A DNA stretch of 64,000 nt, taken from positions 6,944,001 to 7,008,000 of the forward strand of contig CP075493.1 in NCBI GenBank assembly GCA_021613535.1. The letters are read 5' to 3'. The translations under genes and the position numbers were made by a program. Position 1 is the first letter of the stretch, and the number at the start of each line of letters is the position of its first letter. Origin of the DNA: Adineta vaga (taxonomy: Eukaryota > Animalia > Rotifera). Shown here piece after piece: positions 36,757 through 43,441 of the stretch. A model generated the notes under the pieces. That model saw nothing but the letters and a program-made list of their open reading frames with translations, did not search any database and had not been told where the DNA came from.

Positions 36757-38429
36757 ATGTCGAAAGATAGATTAAAAGACTTGCAAAAAACTGTAAGTTA
36801 TCACAAATAGAAAAACTCAGTTCTTTTCAATCAATTTCATATTATATTTTTCTTTTTATTTGAAGAGTCCATGGTCACGTGTAACCTATCGAAGATTATC
36901 ACGACAAGTATAAATATCTTTAATTATCCACAAAAAAAGGAATTGCTTAGAATTTAGATAGAAGAATAAACTAAACTACTAAATCAGAGGGCGAGTTATA
37001 TAATGTTGTGTTGCTATTGTTGTTTTGTTTTGTTTTGTTTTGTTTTGTTTTGTTATTGAGCATGTTTAACTTTAGTTACATTTGATTTGAAAATAATATC
37101 AATCATTATTTTTCTTTTTTAATAATAGCTTCGAACTTCTGACTTACCAAATGCTACCAACGATGGTGGTGGTCAATTCATTTCCATTGAAATGGAGAAG
37201 GAAGGCAATGTAGCGGAATTTTTAGCTCAGGTAAACATGATATTGTTACTTTCGTTTGCCATATATATATATATATAGAGCGATTGAAATTATCATTTAG
37301 ATTGATTTAATTCGTTTACTTATCGATAAAATCGAAGAAGATGCTGGAGAAATCTGTCAAATCCATAAAAAAATACTTGAACCTTTGCCCGATCCAAGTA
37401 AAAATATCATTCGAAAACGAAAAAGACAATATTATTATATTCATTTTTTGTAGAACTTTCAGAAAATCTGGATAATAAAACAGCTGATATAAAAAAATTA
37501 GCATATGATGTTCAAACAAAACTTAAAAGTATCCAGATCTCGATCTTTTATTGAAATTTGATTAAAAGATGATTCTTAACTGTTTAGAACTGGAGCAAAT
37601 ACAAATCGATCAAACTGATGCCGATAAAGCAAGTGCTGTGTGGCGTATTAAAGAAACGCAGATATTTAATCTTACGTACCGTTTTCGTCAAGTTATGCAA
37701 AAACATAATCAAGAGTTCGTTTCACACCGGGAACGATGTAAAAAAGTTATTAGCAGTGAACTTGAAATAAGTATGTAACGATCGATTATTGAAAATTGAA
37801 ATCATTTCACTTTTTCAATAGCTGGTATTCGAAGAACTGATGAAGAATTAGAAGAAATGATTGAAAACGGATTTCCAGGAACATACAATTTCTCTGTAAA
37901 TTTTATCTATTTATTTTTCTCTCTACATTCGCACTTTTTCTTCTCATGTAGATTATGATAGATGTTGAGAAAGCTAAACAATCCCTCAACGAAATTGAAG
38001 CTCGTCATCGTGACATAACGAAACTTGAAACTTCATTAAAAGAATTACATGCGATGTTTCTTGATTTAGCTGTGCTCGTAGCAACTCAGGTATTCATCAA
38101 TTGTCTTTCAACATATCGATTGATAAAATCATTTCATTTGTTCATATGAAAAAAGGGTGAAATGATTGATAATATTGAACATAATGTTTCAAAAGCTGTC
38201 GACTTTGTGGGACTTGCAGCTGAACAGGTCTATAGCGCAAAAGAATCGCATGAATCAGCTGTAAAAGTAAAGAAAAATTATGATTGATGAAAACACATTT
38301 CTATCTTCTTTTTTTTTGTCGAAATAGAAAAGGCTCGTTGTATACATCATTATAATTGCAATTGTTTGTATTCTTATTCTGATCCTCGCTGCCTATTTTA
38401 CAACTCAAAAGAAATTATTAGGAAGATAA
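36757..38429 (+). CDS. Plasma-membrane (Qa) syntaxin paralog, divergent, ~10 exons
   Basis: [10 protein letters not shown]-peptide, Habc helices, [78 protein letters not shown]. Confidence 0.9.
37017..37054. repeat. (TTTTG)n microsatellite in a syntaxin intron
   Basis: About six tandem TTTTG units read directly. Confidence 0.9.
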
Positions 38430-39799
38430 AAATATCATGATAGATATTTTTCATTCAATGACGTATTGATTTTTTTTTAATTTGTCGCTAAAAATATTAT
38501 CGTTGTATTTTTATTCAGTTTTGTCTTTTCAATAAATCAAGTTTTTTTTTGCTTTTTTTCCTCGAACTAGATCTATTTAGATTCTCAAATTTGAATGTGT
38601 CAAGCATAACAGGTAAGGGAAAGATTAGCTTTCAAACTATGACTATCGCTGTAAAATTCATGTTTCTCTCTTACATAATTTTAAAAAATTAATTTCTTTG
38701 AAGATTTTATTTGATTATGAGATTAAATCTAAATGTACATTTCCGTAGTTGAATTATTAAATTCTATACAAATTTCAATGTCATACATTTATGTCAGCTT
38801 AAAGTAGGTTTTCAATAGATTAGTTAATGAAACTAAAGCTCTTTGAAAGAAACATTTCTTCTTGTTCATTCTTGTTGAAATAATCAAGCTTATCATATCG
38901 TAGACATTTATGAACAAAAGCTGTGCATGACTTTTTAATGTTTTCAGAATTACTAAGATGAAGAACACTGTGTATTGTTCGCTTTTGTTTTTCAAAAAAA
39001 GTCTAAAGCAGATTAATTTTCCATAAAGAAAATTCTAATCAAGTTGTACTTCTATTTATCTTCGAAATAGCAGCGAGCTGAATGATGAAGACTATCCGAA
39101 GTTCAATTACTTTATCTACCAATAACAACAACTTCAAAAGAATTTTCTTTCGTAAAACTGTTTAAACTCATTGACATCAGGTATATATATATATGATCGT
39201 ATTTATGCATGGTTGAATATTTTTAATGATACTAAGCTAAATTTAGAAGAGTCTCATCATTTATAATACGGTGATGAGTAAAAAATACAGTGCAATTACT
39301 GTTATCATAAAATGTGATCCTTTGGTTTTATTTCTTTTCTGATCTTGATTGAAAGAATCGATTTATTTATGATGTCTTTAATATAATAAGTACATTATTT
39401 CACCCACGTATATTCAATGGCAACGAATTCATGTCATGACTCATAGATCGTTTCTGATTGGTCGAAAGATTTTATTAACAGTGCACAAATGATTTGTTTA
39501 TGTATGCATTGAAGAAAAGAAAAAACTGATGCTGTCTTCAATGGCATCTTATTACGAGTAATCTTGCTATACTGTGATTTTTCGCTTTACATCAAATAAT
39601 GATTCATCGATGTTTCTTTTTCTGTATAAAATGAATTGAGTGGAAGAGATTTTTGTCGTCAAATGTTTTGATTCAATTTTTCAATGAAAATAGTGTCACC
39701 TATTGAATTTTGTTATTGTTGTTGTTGTTGTTTTTTTGGTTTCTTTTTTAGATTTTCAAACAAATGTCTAATAGTTTGAATCAATAATATTCCTATTCC

Positions 39800-42700
39800 A
39801 TGACAAAAGATCGATTGCCCGCTTTACGGGCTGTAAGTTTTTCAAACGAAATATTTATGTTTTTATTTTCTCGAAACTATGATTTTTTAGGCGCAAAATG
39901 CGGAAGATAGCGATCCGGATGCCGCTTATGTCGCTATTAATATGGAAGATAACAGTCGATTTATGTCCGATTTTTTTGCTCATGTCGATTCATTACGAAC
40001 GAATATCGATAAAATAAGCGAATTGGTAGATGAAGTTAAACGTCTTCATTCAACAATTCTTGCTGCACCACAAGCAGATGATCGAACAAAAGAAGAACTT
40101 GAAGAGAAAATGGCCGATATTAAAAAATTAGCTAATGGTGTTCGACAAAAATTGAAAGGTAAGTGAAAAACAAACAAACAAAGAAAAACTTAACAAATCT
40201 CTGTATACATTTCCTTATAAAATACTTTTGTCAAAAACTAACTTTAGCAATGGAAACTGAATTAGAACAAGAAGGAAATGAAAATGCATGGCGTACAGCC
40301 GATATACGCATACGAAAAACTCAGGTTTTCTATCTATCTGTAGTCAGTTTGGGTGTTGTTTAGATATTATTTCGTTTTCTTTTTAAATTTCAATGTTGTC
40401 TTGTTTCGTCATCCTTTGTTGTTTATCCCCTTCTTCTTATTATTATTACAGAAATGGAACAACATCAAGAACAATCTCAGGCAACATCTAGCAAAACTCA
40501 AGCACAATTACGAATTGAAAAATCACAGGTAGTATAGAATAAATAAGTTGACGACACGACACGACACAATACAATTATTCATCTTCATCTTTCCCCTCGT
40601 CTTTGTTTGATGTTAAAAAAAACTTTTCGATTGAAAATACAAACAAACATGAGATAACTTTTCTATTTAGCATGCAACATTATCACGTAAATTTATTGAC
40701 GTAATGAATTCATATCGAAATGCAGAAATTGAATACCGAGAACGATGTAAAGCTCGTATTCAACGTCAACTTGAAATCAGTGAGGAATTCTAACTATTGT
40801 GTCGTGTCAAATATCTATATGCTTTTCATGTTGATCTGTCTGTCTGTCTTTTCGTCTGTCAATTTGTTTTTATTAGTTGCATAATCATTTGAAAAAATTC
40901 AATCAAATTATGATTGATTATCATCTTGCTAAAAGAAATTATCTCGAAGAAAGTAAAAAAAAATTAAAAAAACAAATAGAATTGAGTGAGTTTGAAGCTA
41001 AAATGAAATCATTTATTTTGTTCTGTGTCTTGTTTTCTGCTAAGTCTCTTTTTTTACTTCTCTATATGTATGTTTTATGCTTTTGATGTTGTTTTGCATT
41101 TATGTTGTAGTTATTTGTTTTAACACAAAAATTTCGTGATGTGATGAACGATTATAATCAAGTTCAGTTGGGTTATCGACAAAAATGCAAAGAGAGAATA
41201 CAGCGACAGCTTGAGATCAGTGAGCTTTGTTTTGCTTCTATTTATTATTATTATTATTGATGTTTACAAAATTAACGAAACACAGATTTAATCTGATCAA
41301 TTTTATGTTTTTAGCCGGACGATCAGTAACTGAAGGAGAAGTAGAAGAAATGTTAGAATCTGGTAATCCATCTGTATTTACACAAGGCGTGAGTTGAAGA
41401 ATATAAAAGTTGGAAGATAAATGTGGATGGTATCTTCTTTCTTTTGTTTTCTTGAAGATTATGGTTGAAACCGCACAAGCTAAACAATCATTAGCGGATA
41501 TTGAAGCTCGACATGGTGATATTATGAAATTAGAAAAGAGTATCAAAGAATTACATGATATGTTTATTGATATGGCTGCACTTGTTCAAACACAAGTAAA
41601 TTCTATGAAATTATATTTTTGTGAATGTATGCTTTTGTTTTTTTTCATTCAAGGGTGAAATGATTGATCGAATTGAATATAATGTTGTACAATCAGAAAA
41701 TTTTGTCAAAGCTGCAAGTACAGATACGAAAAAAGCTGTTAAATTCCAAAGTGCAGCTCGACGGGTAAGTTTTCATCCTTATCTAGTAGTTGAATGTTTT
41801 GTAATAATGCATGTTTATTGGGATCTAATACGCTTTATTCTAATACGTAAATACGCTTTTGCTTGCTTATTCACATTGCTCTCACATACACATATATATA
41901 ACGCGTTCTTCTCTTCTGATTTAAAATAACATCTACTGATCTATTATTCATGATTTTACTGATCAACTTGGATTGCTAATCATTTTTCATCAATGAACTA
42001 CATCATTAATCTTATTTAGAAAAAAATTCTGCTTATTGTATGCGCGATCATAACAGTGGTCATTGTTATACTCGTAGTTGTCATTTATTTTGTGGTTAAA
42101 AATAAGACTGAATCATCCGTAGCAGCCGCAGTAACTACAGCAGCTCCTGGAAAAAGATAGATAGATTTTATCTATGCATACGAAAACGCACTAAACATAC
42201 TAACGGCATGGCTATGAATAAGCACAAAAAATAAAACATATTACTATTCTTATTATTATTATCATTGTTATTATTATCATTTTCTATTTTGTACAAATCT
42301 TCTTCTTATTTTGTTTTCTTCTCATTTTAAAGAAATTATTTATTATTATTGGGATTATTGTGGTCGTCGTCATTGTATTGGTGATTATTTTAGCAATCGT
42401 TTTCGGTCGACAAAAATAGTTTCTCTATTTTCAATAATCTCCTTTTGATTTTTCTCTTTAAACCATATGTATAATGTATACATTTCCAAGACCGTTGATC
42501 GGCTTCTTCAATATTTTCTTTATTTGTTGTTTTTATATTTCACACGAAGGAGAAAAATATGCGAAATTTTTTCGATTTGTACAAATTTATACATTCATGG
42601 TCTTTCCAGCTCACTATTTCAAATATGCTACAGTTTTTGTTTTGTTGTGTTGTATTGTATTGTCTATGTTTGCATGAGACTTAGTATCTTATTCATTTAT

Positions 42701-43441
42701 TTCTATTTTTTTCTCATCGCTCTCTCTCTGTCTCTCTCACATCGCTTGTTAATTTGTTATGTTTATTAAATTACACACGTATTTATATAAAAAAAAAGAA
42801 ACACATCATATATTGATATTGTTTTGTAACGCAACACACAGAAAAGATACAAGTAAATCAATATATTTGTCATGTGCTTTCGTTGATTAATAAGGAATAG
42901 ATTTGTCATTATCTTGAAATCATTAAACATGATTTGTTCTTCTGTCTGTATGTCGTTCATATGTCTTCCGGTTCGCTGCCGATGAATATTGAATTATTTA
43001 TTCTCCTTCTTTTTTCCTTCTTCTTCATCATCATCGTCGTCGTCTTCTTTTCGTTATTATTGCCAAGGGACAGACTGACGTAAACACTTGAAAACCAACA
43101 AATCGTATTTTTGTCATAGAAAAAATGTTGCTTACTTACTGTCGCTGGAATCGTCTCAGCACTACTACTTCTTATCGTAACTGGTCTTGTTTTAAATGCA
43201 ATTCGATAAAAAAAAACAGAAGATCACGTATGAAAAAAGAGAATCAATTATGCAATACATATCAATCGATTTCGCTAGCATTTTGTTTGCATATTATGTT
43301 GTCTGTTTGTTGTTGAAACTATAAATGATTTGAATACTGAATCTTTGCTTTTAGAAAAAAATCATTATACTTATTTGTTTGGCTATTATTATTGTTATTC
43401 TTGGATCAATGGTAGCTGGTTGGCTTGGTATTAAAAGATAG
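39800..43441 (+). CDS. STX1: Syntaxin-1 (unc-64/Syx1A ortholog) with mutually exclusive exon clusters and four alternative terminal exons
   Basis: Exons 39800-39832, 39891-40158, [3a 40248-40324 | 3b 40452-40528], [4a 40671-40779 | 4b 40877-40985 | 4c 41111-41219], 41315-41388, 41458-41595, 41654-41764, [8a 42020-42160 | 8b 42333-42419 | 8c 43120-43209 | 8d 43355-43441]. MTKDRL; [17 protein letters not shown]; [11 protein letters not shown]. Confidence 0.95.
40549..40574 (+). promoter_or_regulatory. Putative splicing docking element TGACGACACGACACGACACAATACAA
   Basis: Complementary to 40795-40808 (14 bp perfect), 40394-40411 (16/18) and 41018-41034 (14/17), counting G-U pairs. Confidence 0.6.

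Follow-up and report, generated by a model that had tools for sequence, protein, structure and literature searches.

Among the closest described systems is the C. elegans gene unc-32, in which UG-rich intronic elements and the protein UNC-75/CELF yield, by tissue, three of the six isoforms allowed by the 3 × 2 mutually exclusive exons 4a–c and 7a–b, a neuron-specific form included (PMC3585155). UNC-75 acts at (G/U)UGUUGUG sites, with upstream sites leading to repression and downstream sites to activation (PMC3627589), and it also regulates the last exons of the worm syntaxin unc-64, where exons 8a and 8b supply alternative anchors to neuronal and non-neuronal forms of syntaxin-1 (PMC4946901). 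Other exclusive choices are made by RNA pairing. In human ATE1, the intronic elements R1 and R4 compete for a single element, R3, in the choice between exons 7a and 7b (PMC7797038). Long-range intronic stems with bidirectional pairing and compensatory evolution loop out exons in Drosophila srp (exon 4) and Dscam (exons 4 and 9) (PMC4691838), and docking–selector pairing brings distant splice sites together in Dscam1 exon 6 and 14-3-3 (PMC6071210).

Here we analyse a rotifer gene that shares features with each of these systems. It lies at 39800–43441 (+) of a 64,000-nucleotide stretch of Adineta vaga contig CP075493.1 (hereafter the window), taken from an assembly of six contigs and 100.8 Mb; the closest protein matches of the window are bdelloid rotifers. 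The gene encodes a syntaxin-1 (Qa-SNARE) with Habc domain, SNARE motif and C-terminal anchor, its orthologs carrying PF00804 and PF05739. Between constitutive exons 2 and 5 stand two clusters of real alternative exons, 3a/3b and 4a/4b/4c. The clusters of unc-32 are non-adjacent, independently tissue-regulated and explained with no RNA stem, whereas those here share a junction and a conserved stem. ATE1 has a single cluster, and compensatory mutants have proven both of its helices; in the present gene, comparative support extends to one helix. In srp, Dscam and 14-3-3 pairing acts within one cluster from docks in flanking introns, whereas here the 5' arm sits between two clusters. Finally, in unc-64 the anchor varies, while here the Hb–Hc part of Habc is swapped. 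In the searchable literature we found no description of this arrangement in bdelloids, of Habc splicing in a syntaxin, or of RNA pairing that couples two exon clusters. What is new is that the clusters adjoin at a single junction, that a stem arm lies between them and that Habc is swapped in a syntaxin.

A preliminary description of the locus had proposed one bidirectional dock between 3b and 4a, with three competing partners: (i) upstream, looping out 3b; (ii) past 4a, looping out 4a; and (iii) past 4b, looping out 4a and 4b. The relevant features are as follows.

39800–39832 (+): coding exon 1 of syntaxin-1 (N-peptide); joint 39832–39891 in four runs
39891–40158 (+): exon 2, constitutive (Ha/Hb helices); 96% identity to the ohnolog on contig C4
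40248–40324 (+): exon 3a, alternative, 77 nt, canonical, ends RIRKTQ; 3a–4a joint in runs X1 and X3; present in every full copy examined
40354–40359 (+): motif U1, UGUUGU, downstream of the 3a donor; 15 of 16 copies including a UAUUGU variant, lost in L024
40394–40404 (+): motif U2, UGUUGUYUUGU, core of partner (i); sequence conserved but not covarying with the dock; likely a protein site, with weak pairing possible
40452–40528 (+): exon 3b, alternative, 77 nt, major form; 3b–4c joint in four runs
40558–40571 (+): 5' arm ("dock") of the conserved stem, with a near-invariant 11-nt core at 40561–40571; 16 of 16 copies, 20–41 nt past the 3b donor
40671–40779 (+): exon 4a, alternative, 109 nt, canonical Hc helix, starts HATLSRKF; inside the predicted stem loop
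40795–40808 (+): 3' arm of the stem, partner (ii); 16 of 16 copies, predicted pairing probability 0.80–1.00
40877–40985 (+): exon 4b, alternative, 109 nt, divergent; A-type copies only, conserved in 12
41018–41034 (+): partner (iii), pairing at chance level (p = 0.215); not conserved
41087–41110 (+): element D2, UGUUGU-rich, over the 4c acceptor; conserved, motif as in U2; with arm (ii) blocked, the predicted alternative partner of the dock
41111–41219 (+): exon 4c, alternative, 109 nt, major form; joints 3b–4c and 4c–5 in four runs
41315–41388 (+): exon 5, constitutive (linker); joints in RNA contigs

The locus was compared with five A-type copies that have 4b (the window itself, A. ricciae, A. 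steineri and two Rotaria), five B-type copies that lack it, seven further A-type loci from metagenomes (one partial) and Didymodactylos; stem and motif counts refer to 16 Adineta/Rotaria-type copies. The ohnolog on contig C4 has an identical layout without 4b. Within each cluster the exons are homologous, equal in phase and conserved, as expected of mutually exclusive exons, and joints in RNA contigs combine a single exon 3 with a single exon 4 (4b use was not seen). All six combinations stay in frame (77 + 109 nt), while two exons from one cluster shift it. Exon 4a matches syntaxin-1A structures (E 2e-11), and the 3a–4a form, already read as canonical syntaxin-1 in the preliminary description, does match the syntaxin-1 of other animals.

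An intact exon 4b occurs in 12 A-type copies, with 81–92% amino acid identity, and the exon is therefore maintained; that it is a decaying or chance exon can be rejected on the same count. No transcript or protein containing 4b was found among contigs of the RNA runs or bdelloid proteins, and a search for a hidden 4b in Didymodactylos found none. The exon, confined to A-type ohnologs, swaps a conserved 14-residue segment for a lysine-rich one.

The choices at the two clusters are coupled in the data at hand, namely contigs from four runs in three studies; that the runs are RNA is probable but a guess. The 3b–4c joint occurs in all four runs and is the major form (depths 153, 108, 28 and 6.4), and the 3a–4a joint occurs in two, X1 and X3 (depths 9.2 and 14.9), a minor form at about 6–12% by contig depth, a crude measure. 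Neither 3a–4c nor 3b–4a nor any joint with 4b is among those listed for these runs. Were the two choices independent at these depths, each cross joint would be expected 7–17 times more often than 3a–4a, by arithmetic from the contig depths. Bdelloid proteins from short spliced contigs agree on the major form, all 17 of them being 3b–4c. These contigs support the coupling that the preliminary description predicted, with depletion of 3a–4b, 3a–4c and 3b–4a; the 3b–4b form that it also predicted does not appear in them. The 3a–4a mRNA is shown at its central joint only, because the 2–3a and 4a–5 joints are not listed and one 3a–4a contig retains part of the upstream intron. Since all six combinations are in frame, nonsense-mediated decay cannot create the coupling and is ruled out as its cause. 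Steric hindrance between 3a and 3b is also unlikely as an explanation: the 3a–3b introns, at 75–127 nt, exceed the gene's ordinary introns of 58–95 nt.

Pairing (ii) stands out from the other proposed helices. In the window it comprises 14 of 14 Watson–Crick pairs (−21.0 kcal/mol) between arms 223 nt apart, and folding of the window gives it a probability of 0.99–1.0. A complement of the dock core sits 17–36 nt past the 4a donor in all 16 copies, and the 11 pairs of the core show a total of one mismatch and two G–U changes. The conserved stem is 14–22 bp long, reaching 22 bp in R. sordida B, with clade-specific extensions of three pairs on one side in A-type copies and three on the opposite side in B-type copies. 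We counted arm pairs from a table anchored on the core, because MAFFT shifted the B-type arm off its register. At two positions of the flanks both sides have changed, from G–C to U–A and from C–G to A–U or G–U. Pairing is stronger between cognate than between permuted arms (−24.2 versus −21.2 kcal/mol; within clades p = 0.02, a permutation value that ignores the relatedness of the copies). A single A/B divergence accounts for much of this signal, which therefore amounts to few events. Shuffled controls agree: (ii) exceeds them in an ungapped intron-versus-intron helix search (p < 0.005), and the best dock duplex after 4a has a mean z of −4.5 over 16 copies. On this comparative evidence we regard the stem predicted to loop out 4a as real. 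A conserved dock with a conserved, compensating partner, the hallmark of a docking site, is thus found for (ii), and this part of the preliminary description holds, compensatory change included.

The other two partners fare differently. Their coordinates and pair counts had been given exactly, with 16 of 18 pairs including two G–U for (i) (−16.7 kcal/mol) and 14 of 17 for (iii) (−13.8 kcal/mol) in the window. The same ungapped search found no helix beyond shuffles in the 3a–3b or 4b–4c introns (p = 0.385 each), and the dock duplex is unremarkable in both (z −0.4 over 16 copies and −0.8 over nine copies, respectively). Folding of the window assigns (i) a probability of 0.000 and (iii) one below 0.01, even with arm (ii) untranscribed or blocked. 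We reject partner (iii), whose site is not conserved and whose pairing has p = 0.215. For (i), a dock-only shuffle test gives p = 0.025 in the window and 0.08 in the ohnolog. The 16/18 register needs an extra GACAC repeat in the dock, which three of the 16 copies have, and as a general feature this register is rejected. The U2 sequence itself is kept, without covariation with the dock (cognate −11.6 versus permuted −12.05, p = 0.91, in a test that mis-picked the L024 site), energy advantage or predicted formation; before arm (ii) exists, the core pairs with U2 at a probability above 0.1 in 2 of 16 copies. The dock has helix support for one partner, (ii), with mixed results for D2. Because the UGUUGU core of (i) recurs at further sites in a pattern suited to a CELF-type protein map, the data do not establish one bidirectional dock for which three partners compete.

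That pattern resembles the layout known for CELF/UNC-75. UGUUGU occurs at 19.7 per kb in the 3a–3b intron and 23.3 per kb before 4c, compared with 0.9 per kb in the window and none in 2.3 kb of constitutive introns. The enrichment is about 20-fold downstream of 3a and upstream of 3b and 4c, a match that concerns the hexamer core only and comes from orthologs that are not independent. The motifs also occur in Didymodactylos, which is without the dock core. Counting against a protein reading, the bdelloid motif UGUUGUY differs from the exact worm heptamer.

Combining these observations, we propose that the stem and a UG-binding protein form a switch that sets both clusters, a reading to which we give a probability of roughly 55%. 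Comparative and RNA data show the stem and the coupling; we infer that a protein acts, in which tissue, and what it does to the stem. By default, the stem would form, enclosing 4a and its two splice sites in an approximately 220-nt loop, and would move the 3b donor near the downstream acceptors, favouring 3b–4c. In some cells, most likely neurons, a CELF/UNC-75-type protein would bind the UGUUGU sites, activating from its position after 3a and repressing from those before 3b and 4c. The same protein may also occupy the UG-rich 3' arm and hold the stem open, so that both choices would flip jointly to the canonical, neuronal-type 3a–4a syntaxin-1. A tissue-specific splicing protein probably does the rest of the switch, and on balance we favour co-regulation plus one stem over a three-way pairing contest as the origin of the coupling. 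This layout points to two products of a single gene, a canonical syntaxin-1 of neuronal type and a divergent general form, which differ by a swap of about 60 Habc residues.

A purely cis-acting alternative is possible, and we consider it a good deal less probable. In it, one intronic element between the adjacent clusters pairs up- or downstream and so couples both choices: U2 upstream would loop out 3b to give 3a–4a, and arm (ii) would loop out 4a to give 3b–4c, the weak upstream helix forming co-transcriptionally or with stabilisation by protein. Both observed joints, and no others, follow from this model, as does their rank order. UGUUGU is a wobble complement of the dock, and in one register U2 can pair with the invariant core of the dock at 10 of 11 bases. 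In a Rotaria B copy (L009; 3514–3618 and 3948–4044), UAUUGU stands at U1, U2 and D2 alike. No other single change would leave all pairs with the dock ACAAUA intact, and the A copy of the same assembly has not undergone it; the U2 variants of L024 and L021 give better complementarity. Against these points stand the lack of U2 covariation (p = 0.91), its ordinary energy (z −0.4) and its probability of 0.000 in the window. Didymodactylos (L012), a single genome, cuts both ways. It has a 15-bp stem enclosing 3b (5467–5481/5718–5732, −23 kcal/mol, 0 of 100 shuffles), which is the topology the preliminary description had proposed, and, from the same intron, a weaker, low-complexity 14-bp stem enclosing 4a (5650–5663/6494–6507, p = 0.03). 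However, their arms do not overlap, so the two stems are not in competition. If coupling in cis is true, Didymodactylos gets there with unrelated helices.

A dock that governs cluster 4 alone strikes us as unlikely. Here arm (ii) would hide 4a, or the dock would mask the 4c acceptor if arm (ii) is occupied, and exon 3 would be set separately by cell type. With arm (ii) blocked, the core is predicted to pair with the 30 nt directly upstream of 4c; the probability is at least 0.57 in six of the 14 copies, the window among them at 0.77, the dock preferring this element over (i) in those six, and B-type copies keep a 12/13-bp match before 4c (within-clade permutation p = 0.025, relatedness again ignored). 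Yet the probability is at most 0.2 in the remaining 8 of 14, the B-type sites are better partners for A-type docks than the A-type sites are, and the loop would also take in 4a and 4b. Least probable of all, in our judgement, is that the coupling is an artefact, with cross joints lost in contig assembly and a stem that merely tunes 4a inclusion. Rare variants do drop out of contigs, the RNA status of the runs is guessed, and several NCBI gene models join 3b–4a and one 3a–4c. All of these models are predictions, however, and some in the same series are visibly wrong, fusing 3a to 3b or reading 4a through into 4c; moreover, the rarer expected joint, 3a–4a, survived assembly in two runs, while cross joints expected to be 7–17-fold commoner are absent. 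Between our preferred combination of stem and protein and wiring in cis, the locus itself offers a handle: introns of about 100 nt, choices that meet at a single junction, and natural variants with and without 4b and in the helices place the question of cis wiring versus cell type within a 1.1-kb minigene.

The gene also has alternative last exons with different membrane anchors, as in worm unc-64, at 42019–42160, 42332–42420 and 43355–43441. The first two, which lie within the stretch covered by the RNA contig comparison, are spliced there, and the third, which lies beyond it, is found in ortholog proteins. Between the second and third, at 42642–42653, lies UUGUUGUGUUGU, described as the UNC-75 site in unc-32 and present on the + strand of the window in this sole copy. 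A divergent tandem syntaxin paralog at 37130–38430 has no intron at the exon 3/4 junction, and its exon 3/4 region scores nearer to 3b + 4c than to 3a + 4a; A. ricciae has an upstream syntaxin gene too. A further, distant syntaxin paralog (G000:C4:9721248-9721430; L003, L008) is 44% identical to exon 2.
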